Source of the DNA: Octopus bimaculoides
Lineage: Eukaryota
DNA length: 41,238 bases
Assembly (NCBI RefSeq): GCF_001194135.2
Contig: NC_068988.1
Location: 71,780,693 to 71,821,930, forward strand
Direction of reading: 5' to 3'
Every line of letters starts with the position of its first letter. The stretch's first letter is position 1. Of this stretch, positions 45 to 38,532 are shown piece by piece. Both the position numbers and the translations under genes were made by a program. The notes below the pieces were generated by a model that saw only the letters and a list, made by a program, of their open reading frames with translations, was not told where the DNA came from and did no database searches.

Positions 45-1267
45 TAAGGTGCGTAAGGCATTTGAGGACATACCTCTTTTGGGTCATTGGTGCATTTTTT
101 GCTAACTCTGTATAATTTTTGTTTCAGAAAATAATAATGGCAGATCCTAACCTTCCTCAAGAAATGAAGAGGCATGCTGTTATTGTGGTTATAGAGACCG
201 AGCATAGCAATTTAGAAATATCCTGATTTTTAAAAGTCTACAAAGTCTGTAATGAGCTAAGGACTGAAGATGGAAACGTATCATCAGTATCAAAGCATAA
301 AAAGCATTCTAAACACTCTGAAATCATCAGAACACCTGAATTTATCCAACAAGTTCAACAGACCATTGATTGCAATTCCAGAAAGTCCATGAGGTCAATT
401 GCAAAAGATCTCCATGTGTCAGAAGGAACAGTCAAAAATGTTGTCCACGAAGACATCAGATATAAGTCTTATACGATGAGAAAAGGTCAATTTGTCAGAA
501 AAAGGAAAAGAAAATCACTACATCAGATCTAAAAGACTCTTAAACAAACTGAAACATCCAGCAGAAGATTTGATTTGTTTTTACTCGGACGAGAAATGTT
601 AATAGAAGAAATGACAGATGGTTATGTGCAGACCCTTCTCAAGTTCCAAGTGTTATGCAGACAAAATTTCCTGCAACTGTCATAGTTTTAGGGGTTGTCA
701 GCAACGAAGGACATGTGATACCTCCTTATTTCTTTCCACAAGGATTTAGAGTAAACTCTGCCGCCTACATTGAGATCCTGAAAATAATTATTAAGCCCTG
801 GATGGATAGTGTATGCAATGGAAAGCCACATATGTTTCAGTAAGACTCTGCACTATCATACATGGCTCTAGTAACACAGGAATGGATGGCTGAAAATTTT
901 GATGATCACATAACCCCTAACATTTGGCCTCCTAATTCTCCAGATCTCGATCCATTGGACTATTACATGTGGAGCGTTGTTGAGAGAGAGGTCAATGAAC
1001 ACAGCCATAACACCAAAGATTCTTTGAAATCTGCCATACTCAGAGTAATGTCCAAAATAAATCTGGACCACTCGATTCGAGCATGTGGATGATTTAGATC
1101 TCGTATAGAAACAGTTGTTGAAGCTGAAGGTGACTTTGTTGAATATTATGATAGAAAAAAGGTTTATCTTTATTCCCACAGCATTTTTTTATTAATAAAG
1201 TTATCTGTTATTAAATATCTGTTATTTTATAAACATAAATCTGTCCTCAAATATCGTACGCACCTTG
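45..1267 (+). mobile_element. Tc1/mariner-superfamily DNA transposon, DD37D (maT-like), full-length but inactivated
   Basis: Imperfect TIRs of about 26 bp (taaggtgcgtaaggcatttgaggaca / RC caaggtgcgtacgatatttgaggaca), TA at 43-44 and 1268-1269. Transposase remnant from ATG 137 with FYSDEK, *DSA and WPPNSPDLDPLD; 37 residues between the 2nd and 3rd catalytic D; stops and frameshifts present. Confidence 0.9.
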
Positions 1268-1749: not shown

Positions 1750-2273
1750 CGATGGTGAGATGAAACGTTCATAGACTCACTATAAAGAAGTGATTCTAAA
1801 TAACTGTATTGGTTCTTAGTTGATATGATAGATAGCAGTACAACGGGTGTAAATGATACCAACCCTTTCCAGTCCCTATTCTTCAATCCATGAGATATAT
1901 CATATGATATGAGCCTTATTTATCGACAACCCTACCCTTCAACAAAAGAGTTTGCATCCCTCAACAGACAAATGACGAAAAAGAAGCACGCTTCACCATA
2001 GCCGGCACTAAAATTCTCCTGATTTGGCCCCATATGACTATCATCTGTTCCCCCAACACCTGGCTGGGACCCAGTGAGGATGACATCATATCTGATGTTG
2101 ATGACTTTTTTTACCAACACGATGAAAGCTTGTTCACCAATGGGATTAAAGCACTGCAACACCGATGGATGAAGTGTGTGGACCGCAAAGGTGACTATGT
2201 TTAAAAATAAACCTCATTTGGTCACATTCATCACTGTACCTTTTCGGCCTATGAACTTCCTAACCGACCCTCG
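1750..2273 (+). mobile_element. internally deleted mariner (DD34D-type) remnant in intron 1 of peptide gene copy A
   Basis: Degenerate TIRs (cgatggtgagatgaaacgttcatag / RC cgagggtcggttaggaagttcatag) and a C-terminal transposase remnant SPDLAPYDYHLFP...RWMKCVDRKGDY at about 2015-2205. The same remnant lies at the same position upstream of exon 2 in copy B. Confidence 0.75.
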
Positions 2274-2345
2274 AATACTATATTTTTTTTTTTTTTTTAC
2301 TAACAGTTCTTAAAATTAATTATTTTCTTTTTTCATATTTCTTAG

Positions 2346-2460
2346 TGTCCGATCTTCTTGACAAGCTCCGTAACTTAGATTTATCTAACGGCTGTGAAAA
2401 GGTATGCTCAGCAATTACCGGAGGATTTTGGGAGTTTCTCTGTCCTACAGCCTGCGGCTT
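2346..2460 (+). CDS. secreted Cys-rich peptide gene copy A, coding exon 2: SDLLDKLRNLDLSNGCEKVCSAITGGFWEFLCPTACG
   Basis: Polypyrimidine tract + ag acceptor at 2344-2345, gtaagt donor at 2461, 115-nt open exon, CX3C-X11-CX3C. Collinear paralog at 32171-32285 has identical length, phases and cysteines. Confidence 0.88.
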
Positions 2461-3156
2461 GTAAGTAGAATCATTTATAAACGTCATACTCTTCTATTAT
2501 TACTAAATATATACCAACCTAACGAAAAATTGCATATTATTAAGTAGAAGGAATGAATGGAAACCTAATGAATTAAAGTTTACTTCAAAAAATTCCGAAA
2601 TTTCCAACTATCCGGAAATTAGAATTATAGTACAATGTCTGACATTTATTTCTGTTAGAGACTGTTGAAAAAAGTTAATTCGCAACGGCTTAGATGCTAT
2701 AGCATATTTGATATAAATGTGTAGAAGATAGAATGTTTAACAACTTTATTATTTGATAACACGCAAATACGAAAGCACAACGTGAAGATGGCAGAAGAGG
2801 AAATAATAGTATACTGAGAGAAAGGGATCACTATTCCTATTTTCGATGGGGTTTGTGATCTCCCGTTTCGGCTTTTGTTGTAATATTCTACCTCTGAGTA
2901 TAGGTAAATACTAATGGTGCCTTTTCAAATTTATTCTTTTATCTCTTCGTCAATATAACTGATGGTAATGGTTGTTGAATATAATTATTTAACTTCAATT
3001 TGGAAATGCTTCTCAGAAAGAATATTAAATGAATATCTGTTGAATAAAATGTTTTCAACGCAAAGATAGCTTTAAATTATTTCGATATTATTTCATTAAT
3101 TATATTTAATTCATTTAAAATTGGTTTTATTATTACATTTTCTTTTATCATTGCAG

Positions 3157-3172
3157 GCTTGTTGGTAATTAA
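3157..3172 (+). CDS. peptide gene copy A, terminal coding exon (L)LVGN-stop
   Basis: ttttcttttatcattgcag acceptor; completes the split codon TT|G; TAA at 3170-3172; paralog has (I)VLGD-stop at the equivalent position. Confidence 0.82.
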
Positions 3173-3203
3173 TGCAGTATGTAAACATATCCTATGTATC
3201 GAA

Positions 3204-3209
3204 AATAAA
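3204..3209 (+). terminator. candidate polyadenylation signal AATAAA for copy A
   Basis: Canonical hexamer about 30 nt after the stop codon, followed by T-rich sequence. Confidence 0.5.
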
Positions 3210-3300
3210 CGATGAGGAGTTATTCGTTTTAATTGTTTTGTTTTCTAATGTCAGCATTATTATTTGTATGTGACCATTATAAATATTTTCACTAACCACT

Positions 3301-3459
3301 TCGTAGGCGTGACTGTGTAGTAAGAAGCTTGCATCGCAACCATATGGTTCCGAGTTCAATCTCATTGCGTGTCACCTTGAACAAGTGTCTTTTACTGTAG
3401 CCTCGGGCCGACCAAAGCTTTGTGAGTGGATTTTGTAGAGAGAAACATGAAGAAGCCCG

Positions 3460-3493
<34 letters not shown>

Positions 3494-3555
3494 ATATGTC
3501 TCTGTGCGTGTGTTTGTCCCTCTACCATCGCTTGACAACCGACGCTGGTGTGTCC
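3301..3555 (+). mobile_element. tRNA-derived SINE (family 1), 3'-truncated by the following insertion
   Basis: Degenerate Pol III A/B boxes, core ...aagtgtcttttactgtagcctcgggccgaccaaagc...gaagaagcccgtcg, internal (TG)n; multiple copies in the window. Confidence 0.8.
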
Positions 3556-3565
3556 CCCCCCCCAG

Positions 3566-4942
3566 CGTTTACCAAATCTTATTTGATATATATTATAATT
3601 AAAATTAGATTGTTCATATTACTAAACTTATTGTTATATTAATCTTTGCATGAGTGTAGCCATACTAGGTCTACCACAGTATTTCACTTCTATTCATACA
3701 CAATAAGCCTAAGAGTAATAATATCTCATGGGAAGTCATCTTCCCCAGTGCCCAAATACGAACTTATACAATATAGAGAGGGGATCAGTTAATATTAAGT
3801 TATTACATTTATGTTCTACAGTGGGGTTGTGTTGTTCCTAAGTAGGTAGGACTAATAGGGTCCATTATAAGTGGAGGTAGACCAGTATGCTGGTTGAAAA
3901 ATTAAATCCAGATTGAAACTAGCACAAACAAGCTTACCCATGGTATAAAAAGTACATAAAAATAAAATTAGCTGCCAGGGAGTTTTAGCATTGGGGTTAG
4001 CCATCATGCCCTCTGTATTCCAAATTAGGTTCATGATTGAAAGAGCTGGCGTTTGTTACAGGGGATGAGTAGTTTATATTAAGGAGGAATGGCTTAATAA
4101 GTATATAATGTAGTTGGTTGTTTTGGGTTGGAGTCGAAGTTAAACTCGGATATGCTGGTGAAGGGATAGAGGTACTGTTATTGGAACACCTGTAAGGGAC
4201 TCAGGTATGTAATACTATTAAACTAGCTTTAATTTAGGAGTTTATATATGCCTTCATTTAATATCAAGGGCTACTATTTCTGTGGTTAGGGCATCTTGGT
4301 GCTATTTTGGGGGATGGTGCAAGGGTTTCTAATGTTATTTATATTTAGCGAAAGTAAACTTCCACTTGTGCAGGCAGGCTGTGTTTCTCTTTAGCCTCAA
4401 GTTCAGTAGTGGGTGTTGTGCCACTAGCATGAAAAAAATTTAATTGATGCAAAGATAACATTTCCTGTTTTTCACATTGTACGAAGGTGCGAAGGCGAGG
4501 ATTTTCCATTCAAACGCGAAACTAGTATACTTATCTTTGAGTTCCCAAATATATTTACTTAATCCGGTCGAATTAATCCTATTTCTATTTCTGAAAGAGA
4601 GTTGGTGTGCGGCTAGTCTACGTTTCATTTCATTTTTGGTAACTCCGATGTATATCTTTTTACTAAACTGTGTTGTGACTGTGCACTGGTAAATTACATC
4701 TTTACTTTTACAGGAATTTCCGAGGGCACAGTTATCCTTATCCCTACAGTCGCATAGATTGTGCTGTGAAGAGAATTACTTTCTGGGGGGATAGTGCTAG
4801 GTCTATTAAGATTAATAGGGTTAATATGGTTCCGAGAGTTCCCTTTACTAAAATCGGGATGGTTATGGAGTTTATTGCTTTCATTCTTACTATTACTGCT
4901 GTCGTTGTTATTGTTGCTTCTATTTAAATAGAAAGTGTCTAG

Positions 4943-5813: not shown

Positions 5814-6692
5814 GGATCTTTTTTAAAACGGGGGCCACATTTTTCATTAACGAAACACTTTGAAACTTGGAACACTGGTAGAATGTGTCATATAAAGCAT
5901 CTTTTTCTCTTAGTCTTCTTTAAAAAAAAAGAAATCCATAAGTTATTCCATGTTAAAGTTGTCGTATTTCTGTAATTTCAACCAATCACTGACGTCCATT
6001 CAGCCGATATACATTAAGTGCCGACTACATAAACAAACGATTCTGAAACAATTAACCCTAACCCTAACCCTAACCCTAACCCTAACCGTAGGGTTAGGGT
6101 TAGGGTTAAAGCAAATTTAAAATGAAAAAAGCAAATAAAACGAAGGTATGGAGATTAAATACGCTTTACATCGCTTAATCAGCCAAAGGAGTAAATATAA
6201 ACAACTGAATACTTGTCAGTGATTGGTTGAAATTAACGAAATAAGACANNNNNNNNNNATTTCTGTAATTTCAACCAATCACTGACGTCCATTCAGCCGA
6301 TATACATTAAGTGCCGACTACATAAACAAACGATTCTGAAACAATTAACCCTAACCCTAACCCTAACCCTAACCCTAACCGTAGGGTTAGGGTTAGGGTT
6401 AAAGCAAATTTAAAATGAAAAAAGCAAATAAAACGAAGGTATGGAGATTAAATACGCTTTACATCGCTTAATCAGCCAAAGGAGTAAATATAAACAACTG
6501 AATACTTGTCAGTGATTGGTTGAAATTAACGAAATAAGACAATTTTTTACATGAAATAAATTCGAATACAAAAATATTTTTCTGTTCTATAACACAAAAT
6601 AGATAAGTATACGAAGTTTGAAAGTCTTTCCGTACCAAAAACACTACGTAAAACATTAATGAAAAATGTGGCCCCCGTTTTAAAATAGATCC
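5814..6692. mobile_element. non-autonomous TIR element (MITE) with internal telomere-type repeats
   Basis: TIRs of about 37 bp (ggatcttttttaaaacgggggccacatttttcattaa vs RC ggatctattttaaaacgggggccacatttttcattaa); 8-bp target duplication CTACTTCG at 5806-5813 and 6693-6700; internal inverted subrepeat aatttcaaccaatcactgac; (TAACCC)5...(GGGTTA)3. About 290 bp is duplicated across a 10-N gap. Confidence 0.85.
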
Positions 6693-8251: not shown

Positions 8252-8282
<31 letters not shown>

Positions 8283-8861
8283 AGAAATAATTTTAGAATC
8301 AGGTATACACATTGTAGTGTACTGTTTAAAGCTCTTTCACAATATCCGGTTACTTGATGTCAACATCCTTATGGGTGTATATGCCACTGGATTTACTTCA
8401 AGAATTGCTTTATTTTATGAGAAAAAAATGGAAATTTATGAGTCTTTTTTTTTCGGAACCATTACGATCGTTTCAACCCATCATGCGCCGGTACCTTGCT
8501 GGCGAGATGTTGTACAAACAGTTGTGATACATCTTATGCCTGGAAGCGTCTCCCCTGATGACTTATCTAAAAGTACTTCGTCTTCTATTTGCGCTTCTCT
8601 TATTTGTGTAACAATATATTTTGATAAGTGTAGCGTACTGTACGTCCTCATAAAGAACTGAGATATAATTAAAAAAATTCTTCTCAATAAAATAAAGTAT
8701 ATGTGTATAAAGAAAATAAGGAATCAAATATACATTGTATCAAAGAAAATGTGACACTCATTTAAAACAAAATATTCATCGATCAGAATAGAACAAAAAT
8801 AGCATCGGACATTTATACTGACGTTTACATTTTCTCAAAACAAATATTGTAGCGTATTCTC

Positions 8862-9019: not shown

Positions 9020-10535
9020 GATGGCTGGTCCTAGAGTGACCAATGGTTTCGCATCCACGAAGCAGTAGCCTTGCGGACGATTCATCAGACTCTAATCCGG
9101 TGACAAATTTAACTCTTCACCTCAGGGAGGCAGAAATATGTTACAGTCATTGGCCATTTGGTCATCGAAGGATAAATAGTCCCGCGTCAGTGAGGACGGC
9201 TTATCTCCCTTAGATCAGCTATTTGTAGGCTGGGAGACGGGGAACAAGGGATTCGCTGCTTTTGGTTCGTAAGTACCCTTCCGGGCTTAGTCAGAGAACG
9301 GGGTATCACATGCTTGTGGTAGGTAGCGCTGGAAATGGGTGCATGATGTGAAAATTCCTTGGCGAGTTTTCACTGATCCAGGTTTCAGGGAGTCTTTGAA
9401 TATCGCTCGGTTTTGCAACGCTGGGTCCTGGCCACTCTAAGATCTTCTACTTGTTATCGTATGGGATCCCTTCATCTTTGAGGTGCTACATTTTGCTGGC
9501 CAGGAATGTGATTAATCGTCTTTCCCGGATCCTGAAAGAGAACTTGTGATTGTACAGGCATCGCTTGATGACCGTCCCGGATGACCCGATATATTTCCAG
9601 GTTTGGGTATTGGTTGCGTTCACATTACTGGTGCATCTTCGGTTGGCTCCAGGCTTAGTGATGTTGTTGTTGGCATCGGTGTTGTTGGGGTTGCCGTCAG
9701 TGCTGTTATCATTACGATGCGTGGGTCCGGCGATGACGCTGTGGCTGTTATCACTGTGGTTGTCGTCCCTCGCCGTACCGTTGGCGCTGTTGTCTCCGGT
9801 GGTGATGTGGGTACCGTCGGCGATGTGGGTGCCGTCATTGGTAATGTTGGGTGAGGGGCCAATAACCTCACTGGTGCTACTGGTGTCGGCATGGTCATCT
9901 TCTCCGGCCATAGCACTGGTAGAAGGGTTGTTGACGTCAGTGCTGGTTTTTCTGCCGCTGTCACTGCCTCCGATGCCGTCGATGTTGTTGGATGATCCAT
10001 TGCTGCTATTACTGTGGTCAATAGGCCTGGGTATCACCACAGACTCATAGTGACTCCCTCGGCCTCGCATTGGCCTCCCCTGGACAGTCATTCTACACCC
10101 TACAAAAGCAGCCTGCCTCTTCCCGTGTGTTATGGGTGTTAGCTAATATACTTTTCATGTTGGGTGCATAAGTAAAGAAGACCCTTAGGTTGTGCCTGTT
10201 GAATAAACGTCCGTATCTGTGACTGTGAGAAGTTTTTGTCAATTAACCTGAAGAATATCCTTCCCACACTGGTCTTGATGTTGAGTGAGAAGGCTGAGGC
10301 AAGCTAAACTACGTTTCATCGGCGCCTCCTTTTATGGGTGCTAGAGCCTGGCATGTAGGAGATGCGGTCCTTAACCCCGCTGTACGCCTCGTTGTAGTAG
10401 GGGTGGCGGCGTCAAAGATGTCTTGACTAGAAGATAGATTCGAGATCCTCATGATGATAGCCTTCACTAGGTTCTTGAATATGATAGGGGGTGGCAGGAG
10501 GCTGTGTTGATATAAGACAGTCGCCATGCCAGAAA
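9020..10535 (-). mobile_element. 5'-truncated Penelope-like element (RT thumb, linker, GIY-YIG with large insertion)
   Basis: Minus strand: PPPIIFKNLVKAIIMRISNLSSSQDIFDAATP (thumb), FSLNIKTSVGRIFFRLIDKNF and FNRHNLRVFFTYAPNMKSIL (linker), CFCRV*NDCP, then HYESVV...WKYIGSSGTVIKRCLYNHKFSF; hammerhead motif at the 3' end. Confidence 0.85.
9032..9094 (-). ncRNA. type I hammerhead ribozyme motif
   Basis: RC reads TAGAGT-CTGATGA-at-CGTCCGC...GTGGATG-c-GAAA-CCA-T-TG-GTC-ACTCTA: perfect 6-bp stem I, 7-bp stem II with G-U pairs, self-complementary stem III, GUC cleavage triplet. Confidence 0.75.
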
Positions 10536-11179
10536 AGACAAAACGTATACCTATACATTGTATCACAAAATAAGGATCAAGTTAAAAGAAATACAATAAG
10601 TTGATAAAATAAGCATCTTCAAAATTTATTGATGACTCACTTAATTTAGTCAACTGCGTAGCATTTTCTTTGTAAACTCTAATATTTTCCTAGACAATCT
10701 AATTTGCGAAAAGCAAAAGTTAACTGCTTACGAAAGGAAAGTCCATGACGCAGTACACCAAGTTGTCCAAGGGAGTGAACTCTATAAATAATTATCTCCC
10801 TCGAGTCTGATTAATTACATTTATTTCTGATAAAATATTTTAAGCGATAATATTGCAGTACAAAGTTCTGTTAACTATTCTCTATGCTCGTAAGAAAGAA
10901 AAGCTGTATGAAGACAAAGAAAGATGGCTTCAAATGCAATGTCAGTGAAATCCTAAGGAAGTTCTAAATGAATTCTCTTTCATTAAAAATACTGTTTCTC
11001 AAAATTTGCAAAACATGATTGCAAAAATAGCAAACGGAGCAACTTAGTTATTCGTACTAATATGGTTTCAAAACAAAACACATATATTACATATAATATA
11101 ATATAATAGAATAGAATATATAATAACATGAAATATAATAATCAGGCTTTCAGTAATAGGCACATGCACGCAAACATAC

Positions 11180-11427
11180 CTAATTGGTTAAGAAGTACGC
11201 TTCGCAACCAAATGGTTTCGGGTTCAAGTTACACAGCACAACATCTTCCTGCAGCGTAAGGGAGATAACCGTTATTTAAGAACTTGTTTTCATTATAAAG
11301 GCACATCGAGGACTTTTAAAGATAATTACCCTAATAACAAGGTATGTCCAAGGTATGCGCCCATCCCGCCCGATTAATGCATTCAGAGTTCATTTGGTAA
11401 ACGGAAACTGTACGAAAGTCTGTTGTA

Positions 11428-14299: not shown

Positions 14300-16530
14300 C
14301 GATAAACGCGTTCTATAAAAGTGAGCTATTACAAAGGGAGCTAAAAGACTTACTGTTGTCATAAGGTAAAGAAATAGTGAGAATATTATGATCTTTTAGA
14401 TACCAGATTAATTTACTAAGCCCCGTATTGTTACGTTTATTGATATGCCTAACTGTAGAGTAATGATTAGATATTCTTTTGGACAGCTGAGATGAAGAAC
14501 TACCTATATAAAAAAAAGACGTCGGAACCCGAAGTAATTTTACATTGATAAATAGAATTTCTAGTCTTCGAATTGCTGCTAAGAAAACGAATACGATTGG
14601 AATTGACTTCAGAAACAGTGACCCCGCTGTTAATATTATTTAAAGAATGGTTAGTGTTAACAAAATTAATGTTAGTATTTTCATTTAGTAGATTTGTATT
14701 TAACAACTTATAATTATGCGAAGAGATGATTTATGAAAGTTTTTTTATGTTAGAAAAACCTATCCTAATTCGGTGTGAGTTAATAATCGAATAGTATCTT
14801 GAATTTCTTGGGAAATTCTTTTCTATAGCTTCACAAAACTGGTAATGGAGGTTAGATTCGATATCTGCTAACCATATGGAATTATTAACCAAACAGTTTT
14901 GCTTGGACATACCTTGTTATTAGGGTAATTATCTTTAAAAGTCCTCGATGTACCTTTATAATAAAAAAGGGTCTTAAATAACGGTTATCTCCCTTACGCT
15001 GCAGGAATACATTACTCGATTTGGTGTTGTTATTCGAAATAAAATTAAAATTGTTAATATCGTTACAACTTGATTTCATGTCCTGATTAATAGAGGTAGA
15101 ATTAATGTCTATACGGTTAATATAGGTAATTTTATATAATCTTTATAGCCTGTAAGGCAGAGTTATAAAATACAGCTTTATCATTGAACATTAGCAGATA
15201 AACTAGAAAGTCTAAGTGAAATATTCCTAACTAAATTCTTTGTAATAGCCTTAGAGTGATTACTGAAAGAGCTAATATATTTTAAATTAGTTGAGGATTT
15301 ATGGTATGGGAAATACGAAGCATTATGCAAGTTAAGGGTAATATCCAAAAAGTTGGCTTTAGTTACATCATCGTCAAAAACAATGCTTAAGCTCATGTTT
15401 CGGAAAAATTTAACTAAGCTATTCTTAGTCCTTTGTAATTTTTGGTTAGAAGCATTTTGAAGGTAGAGTAGGCAATCATCACGATATAGACCTCCACTGA
15501 TGTTTGGGAATTGGTCAGCCATCTCATAAAGGATACATATATACCGACCAATTAAGCGATTTGCGCTGATTCAGAACTTCCCATCGTGACATCAAAACTG
15601 TCGGATGTATCTTTACGGACCTACAGCTTGTTATCAAATTTAATAATAGATTTTCTGGCGGCCAACACGATATTAATTTCATCCCTGGTGAGACCTGCTT
15701 TGTTGTGAGCGAGCCAGAGTGCATTGTTAAGTACGATTGGGTTGATAGAAGAAAAGAAACTAGAAATGTCAAATTGGATAAACTTAGTGCACTTCTTGTT
15801 ATTAGAAGAACTAAACCAATCGACCACTTGGAACGAATTAAATCATAAATTAAGCTTTAATTTTTTAACTAAGGTAGGAATATATTTATCTAGAATATTT
15901 TTGCTAAGTACACCGATGTCAGAGATAGAAGGACAAATAAGTCGTAAGGATGGGTTATTAAAAAAATTTTGTTTGTGATATTTCAAGATAAAACGAGGTT
16001 GCTTAGGATCAAGGGGTTCTGTCTTCATCTGTAAGTCATATTTCTCCATAATTTTCTTAGCCTCAAGATTGGCTTTACTGATTGCATTTTTACCGGGAAT
16101 CCTATAATTCTTCTGCATTTCTTTTCTAAGCAATTTTAGGTAATAGTCCTTGGTAAGCCCGTACAAGTTTCCTATTTTATCCTATTGAACCAGTGTCCCA
16201 TCCATGCTCTGAATTTCTTTGGTGATATTGTGATGATACCTCAGATGTTTATTCCTTAAGGCTAAACGGTGGAATTTCACATTCCTCACGATAGACCAGA
16301 GATCGTCTTCAAACTGTTTCAATCTTGGGTTAGGTGGAGGACTGTTTTTAGATTTAAACAATTTTTTGAATATAGAAGCTGGATCGTTAGAGGGCTATTT
16401 AATATCTTTATTGTCGAAGAAAAACGCAAGCCATCTAATACGGTTAATAAAGGAGTTTGTCTTACTAATGAGTTGTTTAAGGAAAACTTTCTTGGGGGAA
16501 TGGGTATATCCTTAAGAGATGCGTTTATAT
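14300..16530 (-). pseudogene. PLE reverse transcriptase + GIY-YIG endonuclease pseudogene
   Basis: Fragments 15843-16166, 15621-15827 and 15181-15522 of the ORF track join across in-frame stops; YRDD catalytic motif. Confidence 0.9.
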
Positions 16531-17829: not shown

Positions 17830-20000
17830 AAATGACTACGCACGTTTCGTGGCTATATTTTCAAATAGATAACTACTAAAGCCAATTCAATTAATAATTC
17901 TATTAATAATCAAATCGATCTACTGTTAAATCTATTCAAAACTATAGTCACTCGTCAGGTCTAAAATAAAGTAAAAATAATGATAAAAAATCAATGTACT
18001 TATTGTAACTTATACCAAATATCTGAATATCTAAAAAGAATACCTGTTTTAAAAATAAATAAATAATCGAAAAACATTTAACAATATTTCTTATAGTAAA
18101 AACACAACTTATCTTATCGAAGAATTGCTGTAAACTAAAATTTTAAACGTAAATTTTAAACGTAATACTTAGAACTTAGCGTTTATACGAAATATATCGC
18201 GTGAAAATATGGCGTAAATAAAAAATTATGGAATAATGAGATAGAAATGTATTTAAACCGTTGAGATGACTTATTGTATTTTTGATGTGAGAATAAGGAA
18301 AAAACTAACTGTAGTATATCATTTGCTTAAAATAGTAAAGTCTAAATAACCTAAATCTAAAATACCTAAAATACATTATATATTATATACAAAATGAAGC
18401 TAAATTACAATAATACAATCTATTTACATTAATTAATTAATTAATTTATTTATTTATTTTATAAACATCTTAGTTTAATGTTATTCTAAATATGTAATAT
18501 ATCCTTTATAATTTCGTGCTAATTTATACACATTCTACTACTACAAATCATAACTAGAACAATTAGTAACATAAACTAGGATTCATATAAATGCACAACT
18601 CAACTAAACTTATTATATAAATAATTTAACTTATGACTGCATTTAATTTTTCGTTCATCTAGGGAATTAAACAATTTTTTATTATTAGTTAATAATATCT
18701 TAAATTCATTAGTACATAATAGACAAGAAGCACTACTTATTCAATAAGATTTAGTTTTACAAACTATCTCCCAATTTAAATTGTACATAATATTTTTAGA
18801 TTTTAGTTCCATATATATTTACTAAGGCCAGTAGAATTAATGAAATTTCTATTCTTAAAAGAATTCATATGTTGAGCCACACGTAATTTAATTTTGTTAG
18901 AAGTCGACCCTATGTAAATAGTATTTAAATCAATGCCATTCATACTATTATCATCAAGCAAAGTCACTACACATTTATATACTACATCATCCAAGTTACA
19001 GTTATTATTAAATTTACATTTATTTTTATCTCTACATGTACAATTAATTATGTTCTGGTCTGTATTATTATTATTGGAATAATTACTTGATTTGCTTTTG
19101 TAAAACTTATTCAGCTTAAATTTATTAAAAGAAGAAATAATATTATCAGCATTATCAGTAGTAGAGTAACCAACTCCAAAATTATCACTAGAAAATATGT
19201 TATTATATTTTTTATTATCTCTAATGAATACCTCAATTATATTTAAAATCTCTTTAATAATTTTTGTTTTAACTTGAGCTCCATAAGGAATAATTAGCCA
19301 AGTTTTGTTCATATTATTTATATTATTACATTTATTTTTCATATTATAAAATTTATTATTATCAATAAAAGAATAAAATCTAATCTTATTTTTTAGTCTA
19401 CTATTATTATATTTATGTTTTGTATTATCATAATCCCTATTACTAATTCTATAATTACCTAAATAAAACTTATCATAGTTATTTATGTTAGGTTTATTAT
19501 TATAAAAAATCATAGGAATCATTGAAAATATAATCTTTTATAGTATAATTATATTTAGAATTATTAAAGAATTTAATATTATTATTATATCCCACCTCCC
19601 CCCAGGGCGTCATTATAATAGGGTGCGTGTTTTTGGAAAATATCAAAATTAGAAGAAAGCAGCGATATTCTTTTACCTATATTATCTGTCAACGATTTCT
19701 TAATCGGGGGTGGATGATTACTATTAGCATTAATATATCTAATGTTTTCATTAATTTTGTAGAATAGTTGGGTCTTACCTGTTATTAAATTCAAATTAGC
19801 ATCTAAGTAATTAACATTATAGTTCTCATTATATATATTTATGCTTAATCCATATCTTTTTTAAAAACTATATAGTTTCTTATATAATTCTAATGTTCTA
19901 TTGGTGCAATCGTTAGTTGTTAATAAAAGGTCATCCCTATATAAACCACCCTCCAACTTTAATTTTTCTAATTGAAGTTCTGATAATAAATAAATTCCCA
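17830..20000 (-). mobile_element. 5'-truncated AT-rich Penelope-like element (thumb, linker, GIY-YIG)
   Basis: YINANSNHPPPIKKSL...RISLLSS (19585-19794); WLIIPY, CTCRDKNKCKFNNNC, VVYKCVVT...IYIGSTS...RVAQHMNSF...STGLSKYIW (18803-19522); CLLC...KCSHK downstream; hammerhead at the 3' end. Confidence 0.85.
17834..17961 (-). ncRNA. type I hammerhead ribozyme motif
   Basis: RC: GAC-CTGACGA-GTGACTATA...TATAGCCAC-GAAA-CG-TG-C-GTA-GTC. Stem II pairs at 8 of 9 positions, stem I is 3 bp, GUA triplet. Confidence 0.75.
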
Positions 20001-20082: not shown

Positions 20083-21660
20083 ATCTATCTCTTTATCTAT
20101 CTAGCCAGCTATATATCTACCAATTTATCTATGTATTTGCCTGTCTGTGTGTCTGTGTATCTATTTGTGTTTGTGTTTATCTCTCACCGTTTGACGACCG
20201 GTGTTGCATTGTTTATGTTTCCGTAACTTAGCAGGCTAGTAAAAAGTGGGTGATAAAAATAAGTACCAGGTAGAAGATAGGTACTAGTCTATATTTGATC
20301 GATTAATGCTTTGAAGGCAGTGTCACTTGTATGGTCTCAGTCCAATGGATGAAACATGTGAAAGGAATAAAAATGGTATAAATAAGTATATGAGAGTTGT
20401 CAAATGTACATATTTCTCTTCAGAAGTTTATATCACCTACGTTTATTAATCGTTATAAAAAAGATTAGTCTGTGTGGAGTCTACTGTCACACGAGGCTGA
20501 AACTTATCTGGATAATTGAGACATCTAGGCAACCAGCAGTGCAACATTCGCTTCTGATTAAGAAGCAAATCTGTCACTCTTCTGTTTCATTTATGGCTAT
20601 ATGGAGCAACATGAATAATGTACCTTTCTCAAAGACTCAGTACGCCAGCTAGTCTAAGAAGCGAACCAATCACCTAATGATTGTGAGACCAACACTCGAC
20701 ACATTAGGCCACTATCTTCATCTAAAACAGTATCTCAAAGAAGAAATGAAAAGCAATGAAACGCCAATGTTTGAAATATACGCACAGAGAATTTGACTAA
20801 TAGTCCACAAATTTATGACTTTAAAATGAGGACGAGTGTGAATCAAACTTTATAACTCGAGTTTGAAAAATGGGCAGTTTTCTGGAAGTTTCAGCCACAA
20901 AATTTGTCTTTCAAAATAATGTAAATTTTCGTCCCTGTTTTGTTCTCTGTTGTGTTTGTATTGAAGTTTTTATGTAGAATATCTCGGGAAAATACATAGT
21001 GTTAAAGTTTGTATATGCATTTTTCTATTATGCTTATACAATATCCGTCATAGCAAATCTTCCTTTCTATGTATAGCCTTAATTAAAACAGATTTGCAAT
21101 GATAGTTTATGGACATTCTGTTAATAGGTGGTGGCGTAATACTTATATAACTCCCACTGATTTATGAAAGTGATTTTGCCTTCTGTATGTGGTTGTCATC
21201 CTCTATATAGGATGCAGATGGTATATTTCAACTGATTATATTCAAGTGATAAATATTTATTACCAGTATATCTAGAATTAAGGCAATTTATTCATTAGGA
21301 ATTTAATTCATTAAAACCAATGATTATACGAATAAATTTTTATCACCATTGCTGTGTATATACACGTTGTAATTACTTCTCTGTTTACCGATAAGCATTC
21401 TATATCAAAAACAATTTTTCCAAATCATAAATTGATTTGGAAGGTAAATTTACGACCCGAATGTGAGTTGCTAGACTTTTATCATCCGCTTTGCCATTAT
21501 CCCAATTTTATCTCTTACTGTTGTCCGTAACTTTATACACTTTTCGTATACTCAACACTACAATTGTTTGCTTTAGCTGTTGGTGAATGCATTAAGACGG
21601 TTGTTGTTTTCGTCACCATCATTACTACTATTATAACTATGCTGTCGTACTTAATTTTTA

Positions 21661-21875
<215 letters not shown>

Positions 21876-27062: not shown

Positions 27063-27974
27063 ACTACTTTATATGTGATTAACTATAGTGCATGTGTCCT
27101 TGTTTGGTTAACTCGGGTTTAGGTAATTGTTGAATAAATTATTACTCTGTCTAAAGATGATTAGCACTTTTAAACGCTTTTACGAAAGACAAATAAATTC
27201 ACCTATTTTATGATAACTTCATATTCTTTATCACATTTAGATATTTCTGAACGATAAAGCATGCCCTAAGGGAAAAGTGCCATCTGTGAAGATTCAATAA
27301 ATAGGTTTAAGGAAGCAAAGGTCGGCACTTCAAAATTGGAAGCCCTGCATCAAACAAGGTAAAGAATTTATTTCTGCGGAATATTGTCCTTTTGTCGATG
27401 CCAACTTATTGAACTTATTGCACATGATTCACTAATTCAAAAGAGAAACACTAATTTGTGTTGTGTAACTTCAGAAATTTTAATCAGTTTGACCTGAAAA
27501 ATGTTATCTTGAACCCTTATACTGAGAATTAAATTCCGTTATAGGGACTTGATTAAATCGCTTGGGAGGAAATTTAGTTTTAAATAATCCCATTCGACCT
27601 AAAATGTAAATAGCGATACTGCGACATTCTGGTAAAGATATCTACAATAGGTTAGCATCTTATTCATTGGTTGATATGTCTCTCACCCGTCTAGTTCTGT
27701 GAAAAGCAATACTGCGTTGCTATGGAACTCCATGATTCGTAAAAGAATTAACTTTATGGATGGGGTTGGTGATTTTCCGTTTTGACTTTAGTTGTAATAT
27801 TCTGTCTCTGAGAAAGACATAAGTATATACCGATCGTGCCTTCTCCAATTTATTATTTCTGTGTTGAAATGAGATATTTCACCACAGAATATTAGCTTTT
27901 CAATTATCCTTCAGTATAAATGAAGGTGGTGGAATTAACTGAAACATCAAACTTATTTAGTAATCCAGGATTTC

Positions 27975-27982: not shown

Positions 27983-28704
27983 ACAAAGCTTACGAAATAT
28001 TATNNNNNNNNNNNNNNNNNNNNNNNNNNNNNNNNNNNNNNNNNNNNNNNNNNNNNNNNNNNNNNNNNNNNNNNNNNNNNNNNNNNNNNNNNNNNNNNNN
28101 NNNNNNNNNNNNNNNNNNNNNNNNNNNNNNNNNNNNNNNNNNNNNNNNNNNNNNNNNNNNNNNNNNNNNNNNNNNNNNNNNNNNNNNNNNNNNNNNNNNN
28201 NNNNNNNNNNNNNNNNNNNNNNNNNNNNNNNNNNNNNNNNNNNNNNNNNNNNNNNNNNNNNNNNNNNNNNNNNNNNNNNNNNNNNNNNNNNNNNNNNNNN
28301 NNNNNNNNNNNNNNNNNNNNNNNNNNNNNNNNNNNNNNNNNNNNNNNNNNNNNNNNNNNNNNNNNNNNNNNNNNNNNNNNNNNNNNNNNNNNNNNNNNNN
28401 NNNNNNNNNNNNNNNNNNNNNNNNNNNNNNNNNNNNNNNNNNNNNNNNNNNNNNNNNNNNNNNNNNNNNNNNNNNNNNNNNNNNNNNNNNNNNNNNNNNN
28501 NNNNNNNNNNNNNNNNNNNNNNNNNNNNNNNNNNNNNNNNNNNNNNNNNNNNNNNNNNNNNNNNNNNNNNNNNNNNNNNNNNNNNNNNNNNNNNNNNNNN
28601 NNNNNNNNNNNNNNNNNNNNNNNNNNNNNNNNNNNNNNNNNNNNNNNNNNNNNNNNNNNNNNNNNNNNNNNNNNNNNNNNNNNNNNNNNNNNNCAGAAAC
28701 AATA

Positions 28705-28798
28705 ATGAAGGTCGTGTATGTATTTTTGCTGGTTTTGTTGCCATTGGCAATGGCAGCTGTGTCCCAATACGACGAGGATGTTGATAAGAGATTTTCTT
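28705..28798 (+). CDS. secreted Cys-rich peptide gene copy B, coding exon 1: signal peptide + acidic propeptide + KR (MKVVYVFLLVLLPLAMAAVSQYDEDVDKRFS)
   Basis: ATG in A-rich context (A at -3), MK + hydrophobic core + AMA-A cleavage-like site, DKR dibasic site. Phase-1 gtaagt donor at 28799 is in frame with exon 2 (T|TG = Leu). Confidence 0.85.
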
Positions 28799-31469: not shown

Positions 31470-32100
31470 TTTCTAATCCAGGATGAATGTTAAGTTCAGC
31501 ACTTTGAGCCAGAAAAGGGAGACAATCCATGTAGTGGAAACACTCCTCCTCACCTGTTCCAACGAAGACCAAAGTCATTTCATCTGCAGGAAAGGGGATG
31601 GCCTCAGTTTTTTAGAATGCAAAAATTATTGTGTTTACTGAATATCTCCAAAATTGCCATGCCATCGATGGAGAGTACTATGCCAGCTTGCTGAGGCAGT
31701 TGCGAAGAGATGTCAAGACCAAATACCCAGGGAAACTGACGAAAGGAGTGTTGTTTTATTAGAACAATGCTTCAGCACACAAGTCTTTGGCTTCAATGGC
31801 TGTTGTGCGTGACTGTGGCTTTAAACTGGTTGATTACCCTCCCTGTTCTCCTGATTTGGCCCCATTTGATTATCACCTATTCCCCAACATGAAAAAACAC
31901 TTGGCTGGGAACCAGTATGGCAGTGAGGATGATATCATATCTGCTGTTAATGACTTTTTTTTTTTTACCAACAAGATAAAAGCTTGCTCATCTATGTGAT
32001 CGAAGCACTGCAACACCAATGGAAGAAGTGTGTGGAGCGCAAGGGTGACTATGTTGAAGAATAAACCTCATTTGGTCACATTCAATGACTGAACCTCCGA
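31470..32100 (+). mobile_element. mariner (DD34D) transposase remnant in intron 1 of copy B
   Basis: RFLIQDE..V.HFEPE, MASVF, YYASLLRQL, NASAH, PPCSPDLAPFDYHLFP, WKKCVERKGDYVE; collinear with 2010-2273. Confidence 0.85.
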
Positions 32101-32170
32101 ATACTGCATCTTTTATTCATTTACTAACAATTCTTAAAATTAATTATTTTCCTTTTTTCATATTTTTAAG

Positions 32171-32285
32171 TGTCCGAACTTGTTAACATGCTTCGGGAAT
32201 TAGATTTATCTGCCGGTTGTGTAAATGTATGCCAAACACATGTCAATGGAATATGGGAATTTCTCTGTTCTGGAGCCTGCCGCAT
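32171..32285 (+). CDS. peptide gene copy B, coding exon 2: (L)SELVNMLRELDLSAGCVNVCQTHVNGIWEFLCSGACR
   Basis: aag acceptor after a T-rich tract, gtgagt donor at 32286, 115 nt, four Cys at the same positions as copy A. Confidence 0.88.
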
Positions 32286-32966
32286 GTGAGTAAAATCATT
32301 TACAAGCATCACACTTTTCTATTATTACTAATATACAACAACCTAACGAATAATGGCATATTATTAAGTAAAGGGAAACGAATGGAAACCTAATGAATTA
32401 AAGTTTACTTCAAAAAACTCCAAAATATTCGGGAATTAGAATTAGAGTGCAATGGCTGATATATCGATATATCTTTTAGACACTGTTGAAGTTAATTCGC
32501 AATGGCTTAAATGCTGCAGTATATTTGGGATAAAGGTGTAGAAGATTGAATGTTTAACAACTTTATTATCATTTGATAACACGCAAATACGAAAGCACAA
32601 CGTGAAGATGGCAGAAGAGGAAATAATAGTATACTGAGAGAAAGGGATCATTATTCCTATTTCCGATGGTGTTTGTGATCTCCCGTTTCGGCTTTTGTTG
32701 TAATATTCTACCTCTGAGTATAGGTAAATACTAATGGTGCCTTTTCAAATATTTTTTTTTTTATCTCTTCGTCAATATAACTGATGGTAATGGTTGTTGA
32801 ATATAATTATTTAACTTCAACTTCGAAATGCTTCTCAGACAGAATATTAAATGAAATTCTGTTCTCATTGCAATGATAGCTTTAAATTATTTCGATATCA
32901 TTTCATTAATTATATTTGATTTATTTAAAATTGATTTTATTATTATATTTTCGTTTGTCATTACAG

Positions 32967-32982
32967 TGTTCTTGGTGATTAA
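32967..32982 (+). CDS. peptide gene copy B, terminal coding exon (I)VLGD-stop
   Basis: tttgtcattacag acceptor, AT|T = Ile, TAA at 32980-32982; AATAAA at 33119-33124. Confidence 0.82.
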
Positions 32983-33429
32983 TGCCGTATGTAGTAAATA
33001 TTTCCGAAGTATCGAAAATGAGCAATGAGAATTTATTCGTTTTCCTGCTTTTGTTTTCTAATGTCAATATTATTATTTGAATATGACTATTATAAATATT
33101 TTCACTCACTACCTCTGAAATAAACTTTAAAAAACAGTCGAACATATTTCAGTGATCATTAGTATTTTCTTACAATTCAAAATCTGTTCATAAGAAAAAA
33201 TTATTGTTTCATGTTTTCTAAATTTGACTTAACAGGAGAGAAGATTTTATAAATTATTGACTAGAAACTTAACCCTGAAAAATTTACTTTTCCCTATAGC
33301 AATCTATTAGGCAGACGCACACGCATGCGCACACAAGCACACGCACGCATGCACACACACACACTACATACATACACGCACACACACACAAACACGCACA
33401 CCAATACACGCATGATATATATAGATACA

Positions 33430-34500: not shown

Positions 34501-34567
<67 letters not shown>

Positions 34568-35127
34568 CACAATTTTATATTCAGGTATACACATTGTAGT
34601 GTGCTGTTTAAAGCCCGTTCACAGTATTCGGTTACCTGTGTCAAATACAGTATGGATGCATATGCCACTGGATTTACTTATGTATGAAAGAAAGAAAATG
34701 GAGTTCACGTGACTTTTTATTCACTGGGATCGTTTCGACCTATCATGCATCGCTACCTTGCGGATGAGATGCTGGACAATTAGCTGTGTTGCATCGTAGA
34801 TGCAGATGCGTCTCCATTAGGAACTAAAGAGTGATGAAGATTTCTTTTCATATAAGCAAGAAAATAAAGTATTTAGGAATGAAAGAATAAAAAATAGACC
34901 GATATAATGTAATAAGACCGAGCAGAATAGCACAAAACAAAGAAAAACATTGGGCATTTATATTGACCGTTACAGTTCATCAAAACAAAATATTTTAGTA
35001 TATTCATGTGTGTGTGCGTATGTGTCTGCGTGTGTGTGTGTGTACTTACACCTCCATATATATTTCTACATACATTTAACTATATCCAATACACAAATAC
35101 AAACACACATACACACACATACATACA

Positions 35128-35190
<63 letters not shown>

Positions 35191-38100
35191 ATATATATAC
35201 ATGTATATATATGATTCTACTTAGAGATAAGACGGCAGACAGATAGTGTAGAGACGCAGACAACAGCTGGCCCAAATTGACAGAAGCTGAACAATGAAAG
35301 AATGGTGACAGCAACACCAGCGCCGGCTAACCCCATTTTGACTGCTGCTACAGTCCCACCAAATCAAGAATAATTATCTCTAAACTCTATCGTTGTTTTT
35401 TCGTTCGTAACAACATTTTCTTTGTTTAAGCAAAGAATAAACGTATTATTTATCAAAATTTTCGGGGAACAAAATGAAAATCAATATTCTTATGTACAAC
35501 ATCGAGGTCCACTAAAAACAACTTCTGCCCGTCAATGCGGATATTTGATGTTATCCATACCTTTAATATTCTCTCTTGGAAATTATATGAATTCCATGGC
35601 ATCATATTAACGTGTCCCTCATAATATAATACCTTAAAAATGGGGAAGAAAATTTCAAGCAAAAGTTCCGTAGTAAAGAGTTCAGCTCTCCACTGTTTGA
35701 TTTTAGATTACATCAGTTCACTTATATCACAGAGTTACAATAAACGCATGAATTGCACAACGTCTCATTTCTCCCTTCTCAGCCGATTGTTTTCCTCATG
35801 TCAAAAAGAAAATTATACATGGTACAACAAAATAACGATCAAGTTAATAGAAATACAATGAGGTAAAATAAGCCTCTTTAAAATTTCATATATTACTCAC
35901 TTGATTTGGTCGACTGCGCAGCATTTTCTTTGTAAACTCTAATATTTTTCTAGCCAATCTAATTTAGGAAAGACAAGTGTAAACTTTGTTTAGTAAAAGG
36001 AAATTGTAGGCGAAATACACCAAGTTATGGAAGGGAGAGAACTCTGTAAATGATAATTATCTCCCTTGAGTCTGATTAATTACATTTAAATCTGATATTA
36101 ACTATCAAGTATTACAAGCGATAATATTATTCTACAAAGTTCTGTTAATTATTCTCTATGCTTCTAAGAAAGAATTTTTTTATGAAGATAATGAAAGTTG
36201 ACTTCAAATAGAATGTCAGTGAAATCCTTTTGTTGAATTAAAAATACTGTTTCTCAAAGTTTGTAAAACATGCTTGCAAAAAATAGCAAACGGTGCAAGT
36301 TTGTAATTCGTACTAATATGGTTTCAAAACAAAGACAAATATGTTACATATAATATAACATAACATAATATAATATAATGTAATATGATATAATAATCAG
36401 GCACTCAGTAATAGACACATGCACACAGACATACCTCTTTTGTTAAGAAGTACGCTTGGCAACCACATGGTTTCGGGTTCAAGTTCCATAGCACAGCATT
36501 TTAGGCAAATCTCTCTCTCTGTGACCCACGCCCGGCTAATGCCTTCAGAGATTACGTGGTAAATGGAAACTGTACGAAATCCTGTAGCATATCTATCTAT
36601 TTATCTATTTCTTTCTTTCACACTCGCTCTCTTAGCGGGCTAATGAAAAGAGGGCGATAAAACAATGCACCAGATAGAAAATAAGTACCAGTCTGTATAT
36701 GATCGATTAATGTTTTGAACGCAGTATCCCTATATGGAACCAGTCCAATTGCTGAAACAAGGAAGAGGAATAAAACATGATATAAATGAGTATAGGCGCG
36801 TATATGAGAGTTGTCAAATGTACATATTTTTCTTCAGAAGATTAAATCGCTTACGTTTGTTAATCGTTACAAAACAGATAAATCTGCCTGGAGTCTACTG
36901 TCACACGAAGCTGGAATTTATCTGGATAATCGAGACAACCAGCAATGCAACACTCACTCCTGATTGAGAAGCATATTTGTCGCTCATCCATTTCATTTAC
37001 GCCATATGGAGGAGCGTGAATAATGTACCTTTCTCAAGGACTCAGCACACCAACTGGTTTGAGAATTGAACCAATTACCTAATGATTGTGAGACGAACAC
37101 TCTACACATTAAGCCACGTACTTCCACCTAAAGCAGTGAGAATTTAGCCTCACGTCGCAACTACCTCACAGAAGAAATGAAAACCAATGAAACGCCAATG
37201 TTTGAAATATACGCACAGAGAATTTTACTTTAAAGATGTTACTGCTCTTTATACGTAATTTAATAACGAAGAATGTTTCCAAAAATGTATTTAAGTGCTT
37301 TGCATTAGAATAAAATAATCGTTCTTTCTTGTTTGAGTCGAAGTCCTAGAAAATCGAATTTCTTTATATCTGTTGTGTATGTATGCGTGCATGTATGCAT
37401 GCGTGAAGCTGGCAGATGTTTTACTAGGAGAATAAAACGCAAGTTTTATTCATCTTCCCACATCCTCAGCGCTTTAGCAATAAAAGGAACTTAAAACTAA
37501 AAGTAAATTTTCTACTCCCTGCACTTCAAAGTGTCTATACTAAAATCCCTCCATTTATGACTGTAAAACTCAAGTTTGAAAAATGGTCAGTTTTTTGGAT
37601 GTTTGAACTACTCATTCACTTCTACAAAATTCGTCTTTTAAAATAATGTAAATTTTGTTCCTTCTTTTGTTCTCTGTTGTGTTTGTATTGAAATTTTTAC
37701 GTTGAATATTTCAGGAAAATATATAGTTTTAAAGTTTATATATACCATTTTTCTATACAATATCCGTCATGGCAAACATTCCTTTCTGTGTATAATAGCT
37801 TTAATTAAAACAGATTTTGCAATAATGGTAATGTTTATAGACATTCTGTTAACAGGTGATGGCGTAATAGTTATATAACTCCCACTGATATACGAAAACG
37901 GTTTTGCCCTCTGTATGTGGCTGTCATCCTCTATATTGGATGCGGATCGAACAGGTCAACTGATTATACTCAAGTGATAAATCTTTATTACCAGGATATC
38001 AAGAATTAAGGCAATTTATTCATTAGGAATTTAATTAATTAAAACTATTGAGTATACGAATAAATTTAAATTTCCCTTATTATGTACATACGCGTTGTAA

Positions 38101-38424
38101 TTACTTCTCCCTTTGCCGATAAGTGTTCTATATCTAAAAGCATTTTTTCAAGTCATAAATTGATTTGGAAGGTAAATTTACGACCCGAATATGACTTGTT
38201 AAACTTTTATCATCCGCTTTGCCATAATCCTAACTTCATCTCTTACTGTTGTCCGTATCTTTATACACTTTTCGTATACCATACACCACAAATGTTTGCT
38301 TTTGCTGTTGGTGAATGCATTAAGACGACTGTTATTTCCGTCACCATCATTACTACTGTTATAACTAAGCTGTCGTACTTTATTTTTAGATTTCTCACCC
38401 TCTCTTACTCTTTCTCTTTCACTT

Positions 38425-38504
<80 letters not shown>

Positions 38505-38532
38505 TGTATGTATGTATATATANNNNNNNNNN

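Follow-up and report, generated by a model that had tools for sequence, protein, structure and literature searches.

Tandem genes for fast-evolving cysteine-rich peptides in Octopus bimaculoides, with a near-identical intron patch beside a highly divergent exon

Tandem peptide genes and their coleoid relatives

We analysed a 41,238-nt stretch of the Octopus bimaculoides genome (the window) and found that it carries two tandem paralogues of a gene for a small cysteine-containing peptide precursor, an upstream copy A and a downstream copy B, approximately 30 kb apart. Their peptide-coding exon 2 has diverged at about double the rate of the non-coding DNA around it, and within the adjoining intron 2, most of which is approximately 86% identical between the copies, a single patch of approximately 270 bp is near-identical. 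The two paralogues are members of a family that is undescribed in the searchable literature. The window is AT-rich, with transposon debris, microsatellites and nine N-gaps throughout.

Exon 1 of copy A lies upstream of the window. Its exon 2 (2346-2460; plus strand, as are all parts of both copies) is 115 nt long, starts in phase 1 and ends in phase 2, is flanked by tcttAG and GTAAGT, and encodes (L)SDLLDKLRNLDLSNGCEKVCSAITGGFWEFLCPTACG(L), i.e. the core of the mature peptide with the cysteine pattern CxxxC-x11-CxxxC. Intron 2 follows (2461-3156; 696 nt, GTAAGT...CAG) and then the coding part of exon 3 (3157-3172; (L)LVGN and the stop codon TAA), with an AATAAA signal downstream of exon 3 at 3204-3209 that is kept in O. 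vulgaris, where the C-terminus of copy A is also present (protein P0001). The original prediction had proposed an exon 2, an intron and a short exon 3; this structure is right, given the splice-exact models described below and the annotated protein P0013 (A0A0L8IA49_OCTBM), which is identical to copy A across exons 2 and 3, and needs one small correction, since exon 3 of copy A begins at 3157 and intron 2 therefore spans 2461-3156. A reading of exon 2 as the terminal exon was rejected, the spliced form with exon 3 being confirmed by P0001, P0013 and P0009.

For copy B all three exons are in the window. The coding part of exon 1 (28705-28798) encodes MKVVYVFLLVLLPLAMAAVSQYDEDVDKRFS plus 1 nt and is followed by the donor GTAAGT, exon 2 (32171-32285; flanks tttaAG and GTGAGT) encodes (L)SELVNMLRELDLSAGCVNVCQTHVNGIWEFLCSGACR(I), intron 2 (32286-32966) reads GTGAGT...CAG, and the coding part of exon 3 (32967-32982) encodes (I)VLGD and ends with TAA. 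At the position of the AATAAA signal of copy A, copy B has AATGAG (33017-33022), with another AATAAA approximately 100 nt further downstream. Copy B thus encodes an intact precursor of 74 amino acids (aa) that is annotated in no source. An assembly gap (28004-28693) ends 11 nt before its ATG (28705), so that the promoter and the 5' untranslated region (UTR) of copy B are missing from the assembly, and this may be the reason why the intact gene lacks an annotation.

Splice-exact coding sequence models were obtained for copy B and for three O. vulgaris genes, numbered here within their extracted loci: P0001 (locus L001; exon 1 coding part 10001-10094, exon 2 14677-14791, exon 3 coding part 15445-15460), P0011 (L002; 10001-10091, 11845-11959 and 16613-16634) and P0012 (L003; 10001-10091, 12757-12871 and 14235-14256). 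Genes of the family have three exons, with intron 1 in phase 1 and intron 2 in phase 2. The length of exon 2 is invariant, at exactly 115 nt in each of the seven genes compared (Octopus, Argonauta and Sepia). As intron 2 is in phase 2 (2458-2463 in copy A, 32283-32288 in copy B), its donor GTAAGT or GTGAGT creates an in-frame TAA or TGA, and retention of the intron would give a peptide shorter by 4-5 residues. The gene models P0006 and P0007 end in this way, and in a Sepia RNA-seq contig (L004, 616-834) intron 1 is spliced out and intron 2 is retained; the read-through form is known solely from these two models and this intron-retaining transcript.

Comparison of the window with itself revealed a tandem segmental duplication, 2014-3302 against 31846-33115 (82% identity over 1325 columns), together with further collinear blocks that pair 8252-8553 with 34533-34815, 10552-11247 with 35814-36502, 20227-20798 with 36631-37229, and 20847-21793 with 37560-38521. 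The duplicated flanks had been put at approximately 80-85% identity; the paralogous non-coding blocks are indeed in this region, and the measured range, counting substitutions only, is somewhat wider, 78-87%. The O. vulgaris orthologue of copy A (O; locus L001, OX597821.1) served as the third sequence in a three-way alignment. It matches window positions 2013-4131 with 87% identity, and the collinearity persists for approximately 20 kb.

Outside the near-identical patch the non-coding divergence is 13.3-13.5% between A and B, 14.1% between B and O, and 7.6% between A and O. These distances place the duplication about two-fold earlier than the species split, and on this evidence the A/B duplication is older than the divergence of O. 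bimaculoides and O. vulgaris. Consistent with this, sites at which A and O agree against B (A=O≠B) form the most numerous class in every non-coding block outside the patch: around the gene there are 73 such sites, compared to 28 with A=B≠O and 24 with B=O≠A, and the corresponding counts in the distant blocks are 69, 23 and 29 (10552-11247), 42, 10 and 11 (8252-8553), and 26, 5 and 4 (20227-20426). A degenerate Tc1/mariner transposase tail at the 3' end of intron 1 of copy A (2014-2270, plus strand, in the three-way alignment) is common to copy B (31846-32096; full extent 31640-32096, the start being approximate) and to O. vulgaris (L001 14324-14597), and in all three it ends approximately 75 nt ahead of the exon-2 acceptor, which argues that the insertion is older than both the duplication and the species split. 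The remnant open reading frame (ORF) in copy B (31763-31996) has a weak DDE_3 match (E=0.0036).

An exhaustive profile search with both exon-2 peptides returned seven proteins of 68-99 aa that match at residues ~33-70 (E=1e-14 to 7e-4), and a search with a profile of the family returned 13 proteins (E=1e-31 to 2e-16). The family proteins are named uncharacterised in O. bimaculoides, O. vulgaris and Argonauta hians, and two further members are on a Logan contig of SRR19578103 (Sepia esculenta juvenile RNA-seq), a contig that is also the sole transcript evidence for the family. Exon 2 is real, as its matches among annotated proteins of four cephalopod species show. The peptide of copy A gave no match in a word-indexed protein search, although P0013, an entry of the database searched, shares the identical C-terminal 43 aa, and negatives from this type of search with short queries are hence unreliable. 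No family was found for the peptide in Pfam at E<=1, no relative by sequence search of the PDB, and no PDB match for the peptide model in a Foldseek fold search. The literature search gave no searchable paper that mentions the UniProt accessions or prints the peptide motifs of the family, and nothing relevant among work on octopus neuropeptide precursors.

Precursors of this gene type are 74-80 aa long and share a signal peptide (MKxxLxxLVLLPLAxA), an acidic propeptide that ends in KR (or K-K), typically YDEDIDKR, and a C-terminal peptide of approximately 45 residues, which is encoded by exon 2 and five codons of exon 3 and carries the invariant CxxxC-x11-CxxxC. In alignments of the family the residues C, C, F, C, A and C are invariant, and M, K, L, P and K(R) nearly so. 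The O. vulgaris genes P0011 and P0012 form a tandem pair of their own, approximately 34 kb apart, with mosaic identity: promoter and exon 1 are 95% identical (L002 9723-10154 and L003 9717-10154), a piece of intron 1 is 99.4% identical (L002 10644-10816 and L003 10156-10328), and the rest is 85% identical, while nearly all of their exon-2 changes are replacements and are located in the inter-cysteine loops. Judged from this mosaic, gene conversion may be recurrent in the family.

Divergence of exon 2 and probable selection on the mature peptide

The exon-2 counts made by hand in the original prediction were exactly reproduced. Copies A and B differ at 31 of 115 nt (73% identity), and among the 37 full codons there are 17 replacement and 4 silent differences; the four cysteine codons, TGT/TGC/TGT/TGC, are the same in both copies, and the inter-cysteine loop reads SAITGGF in A and QTHVNGI in B. 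This divergence exceeds that of the flanking non-coding DNA (13.3% background; p=4e-4). Comparison with O shows that 26 of the 31 differences are specific to copy B.

For the mature region (codons 33-74) we estimated the ratio of nonsynonymous to synonymous divergence (dN/dS) in pairwise comparisons according to Nei-Gojobori (NG86). The ratio is above 1 in every pair: 2.1 for A-B, 2.9 for B-O, 6.5 for A-O, and 3.1 for the independent O. vulgaris pair P0011-P0012. The proportion of nonsynonymous differences (pN) is 0.31 for A-B and 0.375 for B-O, compared to non-coding values of 0.135 and 0.141, and after correction dN exceeds the non-coding divergence 2.7-3.3-fold (p=4e-5 for A-B and 2e-7 for B-O); A-O shows a 1.9-fold excess (p=0.07). 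At synonymous sites the divergence, 0.16-0.17, is close to the non-coding rate, which argues that exon 2 is no mutation hot spot. A purpose-written maximum-likelihood codon model (GY94) gave a dN/dS (omega) of 3.7-4.3 for the mature regions of A, B and O, which rose to 4.5-5.5 on inclusion of P0011/P0012; the likelihood ratio test against omega=1 gave p=0.012 to 0.0009, depending on which of several codon-frequency models was used. For the signal peptide and propeptide, dN/dS was 0.5-0.8 with NG86, and omega was about 0.5-0.9 when the GY94 estimates are included.

Taken together, the reading frame, the length of the exon, the splice sites and the four cysteines have been kept while replacements accumulated fast, which suggests, with moderate confidence, diversifying selection on a constrained peptide scaffold. 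This had been proposed from the A/B comparison, and the codon-based analysis with additional paralogues and an orthologue bears it out insofar as dN/dS is above 1 in every mature pair, dN is higher than the non-coding divergence and omega under GY94 is 3.7-5.5.

Several observations count against this reading. The mature region has only ~29 synonymous sites, too few for any of the pairwise dN/dS values to be significantly different from 1, and omega falls to 1.9 and is no longer significant (p=0.32) once the 15 codons that differ at more than one nucleotide are left out; multi-nucleotide mutation events could hence mimic part of the omega signal. Moreover, between orthologues the signal peptide and propeptide are about as divergent as the mature peptide: protein identity is 76% for signal and propeptide and 78% for the mature part in A-O, and 79% and 85%, respectively, in P0003-P0012. 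A conserved signal with a hypervariable toxin-like peptide is clear only for copy B, where B-O identity is 79% for the former and 47% for the latter. The whole small precursor would therefore appear to be fast-evolving. As to copy B itself, it is unannotated, no transcript of it was found, its promoter is inside the assembly gap, and its AATAAA signal is mutated while that of A and O. vulgaris is kept.

Such observations would also be expected if copy B were relaxed or dying, or if exon 2 were mutationally hot, with no positive selection at work. That most of the A/B differences in exon 2 are on the B side, that omega loses significance together with the multi-nucleotide codons, and that precursors throughout the family evolve at near neutral speed between species all fit this alternative. 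We nevertheless regard it as unlikely. Relaxation cannot lift dN past the neutral rate, and dN here is 2.7-3.3 times the non-coding divergence; a local hot spot is excluded by the synonymous divergence of the exon, which equals the non-coding rate; and dN/dS is likewise above 1 for the A-O orthologues and for P0011/P0012. Copy B also retains its ORF, the four cysteines, six splice signals and the exact exon lengths. Under neutral drift the probability of an open frame with all four cysteines kept is approximately 0.01 and that of no indel 0.03-0.14, and the joint probability is approximately 1e-3 or less. As far as these features of its sequence tell, copy B is not a decaying pseudogene. Import of its exon 2 from another paralogue by conversion was also considered and rejected, since it is at most 61% identical to the other paralogues. 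Diversifying selection on a retained scaffold thus accounts better for the divergence of exon 2.

The near-identical patch in intron 2

Beside this divergent exon, positions 2731-2930 of copy A differ from 32548-32752 of copy B by three clustered substitutions (2831, 2843 and 2850) and a 3-nt indel, as had been counted, and in addition by a 2-nt difference in the length of a T-run at the 3' edge, giving an overall identity of 98.5%. The stretch of high identity is longer than the original prediction had it, 2717-3035, with 96.2% identity (12 differences in 319). Against the 13.3% background, 3 differences in 200 nt and 12 in 319 have p<=9e-7, and sliding-window identity showed no other 60-nt window above 95% in approximately 3 kb of further A/B alignment.

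The three-way alignment shows a switch in topology at the patch. Within 2731-2930 there are 13 sites with A=B≠O, two with A=O≠B and none with B=O≠A, so that the sequences group as ((A,B),O), while outside they group as ((A,O),B) (Fisher p=1.9e-5). The sites shared by A and B and differing in O. vulgaris span 2750-2966, and permutation of the variable sites (p=2.5e-4) bounds the tract to 2731-2998. At the same time the A-O divergence in the block, 6.3-7.0%, is like that of other non-coding DNA (7.6%; p=0.52) and of the rest of intron 2 (5.2%; p=0.44). A conversion model, in which changes on the O branch and on the A branch contribute, predicts approximately 14 A=B≠O sites per 200 nt, and 13 were seen.

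These data strongly suggest that the block is an interlocus gene-conversion tract laid down after the species split, with outer bounds 2731-2998 in intron 2 of copy A and a partner at 32548-32820 within intron 2 of copy B; recent ectopic conversion, one of two explanations offered at the outset, is in this way supported by the switch in topology. Since A and O are as close in the tract as orthologues, and not as distant as paralogues, copy A would be the donor, and the most likely direction of conversion is from A to B. It detracts from this reading that the comparison comprises three sequences, A, B and the O. vulgaris orthologue of A.

The near-identity could alternatively be an artefact of assembly, in which reads from one paralogue entered the assembly of the other or the filling of its gaps. 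What speaks for this, and to that extent against conversion, is that the short-read assembly is gapped, with the nine N-gaps in the window, and that local assembly errors do exist, e.g. an exact 283-nt duplicate (5966-6248 and 6259-6541) that flanks a gap of 10 Ns. The sequence around the block, however, is uninterrupted, the nearest gap being more than 1 kb away; the copies are still distinguished by the three substitutions, by a 3-nt insertion specific to B and by the length of the T-run; and identity decays gradually into copy-specific flanks. An artefact is therefore very unlikely, and gene conversion remains the preferred explanation of the patch. The 283-nt twins, which are 100% identical, look like an unmerged scaffold overlap.

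The second explanation offered at the outset was that the block is a functional element, e.g. an intronic small RNA, an enhancer, or a hidden or alternative exon, kept by purifying selection. No other stretch of the A/B alignment comes near it in similarity, which would agree with this, as would three further features: in both species a diverged copy of approximately 100 nt precedes exon 1 (that of copy B in O. bimaculoides) by approximately 0.95 kb; a hydrophobic ORF in the O. bimaculoides block begins with ATG and has GTAAAT in the appropriate phase downstream of it, with the 3-nt indel in frame; and the minus strand has an ORF of 75-100 codons. Between species, however, the block is conserved no better than the neighbouring non-coding DNA, as the neutral-like A-O divergence given above shows, and intron 2 of P0011, of P0012 and of the Argonauta gene has no counterpart of it. 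If only A and B were constrained, approximately 7 A=B≠O sites would be expected, where 13 were seen, and O. vulgaris would need to have lost the constraint. The functional reading is thus not supported, and we consider it very unlikely.

Specifically, Rfam gave no match at the gathering score in the window and none inside the block even at E<=10, no tRNA was found, and the fold z-scores of the block are -1.4 and 0.0; a small nucleolar RNA, a microRNA or another RNA family in the block was rejected accordingly, there being neither an Rfam match nor a significant fold. The candidate for a hidden exon, in which the ATG at 2846 opens MGFVISRFGFCCNILPLSI, an ORF followed by the phase-1 GTAAAT and then by a possible mini-exon of 24 nt, was ruled out since the putative GT donor reads GC in O. 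vulgaris, the upstream copy has no ATG and the substitutions lack a coding pattern. The minus-strand ORF over the block (75 and 100 codons) was rejected as well, as it has no Pfam match and evolves at a neutral rate between species. The diverged copy of the block core (2845-2939) is found at 27759-27858 (plus strand; 73-78% identical) and in O. vulgaris at L001 8960-9064. In approximately 140 kb examined there are no further copies, and there is no sign of constraint; the upstream copy might belong to a low-copy repeat or be what is left of an old duplication within the locus.

A side observation concerns the Tc1/mariner stretch in intron 1, where the site classes are unusually even, unlike in the other flanks: 14 with A=B≠O, 15 with A=O≠B and 9 with B=O≠A. 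An older, eroded conversion is a possible cause of this pattern.

Proposed explanation, related systems and other elements in the window

We consider it probable that the locus is explained as a whole by tandem peptide genes with a diversified exon 2 and a converted patch of intron. The precursor would be secreted and cut after KR, releasing a peptide of approximately 45 residues in which, according to the predicted structure, each CxxxC sits in a helix and two disulfides staple a two-helix hairpin. The AlphaFold2 model has helices at 54-62 and 64-78; its mean pLDDT (predicted local distance difference test) of 61 is of low confidence and makes this part of the proposal less secure. Selection would retain the scaffold (the cysteines, LDLS-GC, F-C and AC) and favour change at exposed positions. 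After the species split a piece of intron 2 of approximately 270 bp was presumably copied from A to B, erasing approximately 14% divergence, and the patch would be a by-product of ectopic recombination between the tandem copies that needs no function of its own. The adjoining exon may have escaped conversion by chance or by way of selection against homogenised exons.

As to the role of the peptide, it may be a component of venom or saliva, a chemical signal (pheromone), a defence peptide, a signalling peptide or another extracellular ligand; a classical cationic antimicrobial peptide is less likely, as the peptide of copy A has a net acidic character. More tentatively, and leaning slightly against it ourselves, we raise the wider idea of a previously undescribed coleoid-wide family (octopus, argonaut and cuttlefish) of fast-evolving, disulfide-stapled helical hairpins that are used outside the cell, in which selection keeps the tandem peptide exons different while recombination homogenises the adjoining non-coding DNA. 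If so, the peptides might serve e.g. as salivary or venom components, as waterborne or contact chemical signals, or in defence.

The analogy with conotoxins and snake toxins that accompanied the original prediction stands as a pattern but not as homology, since the peptide has none to any toxin family (Pfam, and PDB by sequence and by fold). In conotoxin superfamilies the exon for the mature toxin reportedly evolves at an accelerated rate. Like A and B, conotoxins are made as prepropeptides with a signal, a propeptide up to a basic cleavage site and a short C-terminal peptide with a cysteine framework; the cysteine codons are frozen and the residues of the loops replaced, divergence is higher in the mature exon than in the intron next to it, and the genes form tandem or multigene families with dN/dS >1. 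The octopus peptides differ in having no Pfam family or PDB relative, in their host, a cephalopod and not a gastropod, and in their twin CxxxC framework with two predicted disulfides. Moreover, the signal and propeptide of the A/B family are not markedly better conserved than the mature peptide between orthologues.

In the phospholipase A2 (PLA2) and three-finger toxin genes of snake venoms, introns and UTRs are said to be more conserved than the coding exons. Comparison of paralogues there too shows a coding exon that outpaces the introns, a pattern taken as a sign of positive Darwinian selection on a secreted protein. Unlike in the snake genes, the A/B intron is mostly neutral with a lone patch of 270 bp attributed to conversion, and the proteins are unrelated.

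Cystine-stabilised alpha-hairpins with a twin CX3C motif are known from scorpion kappa-KTx toxins (hefutoxin-type), plant alpha-hairpinins and the small Tim proteins. With these A and B share the spacing CxxxC-x(n)-CxxxC, where n=11 in A and B, and the predicted helix-loop-helix. The resemblance is in the motif only, with no sequence relationship or fold match and with a model of low confidence, and unlike the small Tim proteins the A/B precursor has a signal peptide and a KR site.

For the intron patch, the human G-gamma and A-gamma globin genes offer a parallel, in that a near-identical patch including part of the second intervening sequence (IVS2) reportedly exists in these older duplicates. 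In both cases a short near-identical tract with sharp limits is found in older tandem duplicates, and paralogues cluster within the tract and orthologues outside it. The A/B tract differs from that of the globins in being purely intronic, stopping short of both exons, and in that the neighbouring exon is the most divergent part.

An accelerated mature exon together with patchy conversion between tandem duplicates is a textbook pattern, and the interest of the locus is hence in the gene family. Bioactive peptides of cephalopods are poorly catalogued, and a coleoid-wide, probably secreted and cysteine-stapled family with omega >1 would be a reasonable candidate for roles in prey capture, in mate or egg signalling, or in immunity. 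A 45-residue peptide with two predicted disulfides would also be a compact scaffold for structural work. For genome scanning it is instructive that an apparently "ultra-conserved" intron patch beside a hypervariable exon is most readily understood as a recent conversion tract, and that one orthologous sequence sufficed to separate conversion from constraint.

Further remains of mobile elements were observed at 38566-39253, 4443-4775, 18806-19537 and 15184-16181 (all minus strand) and at 227-1150 (plus strand), among them a mariner transposase (Pfam Transposase_1, E=1e-25) and part of a transposase of the DDE_3 type. A GIY-YIG-like motif is present in two ORFs, with a Pfam GIY-YIG match, a weak one (E=2e-4), only for 4443-4775. 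Both are near reverse-transcriptase-like ORFs that have no Pfam match, and this arrangement suggests the presence of Penelope-like elements in the window.

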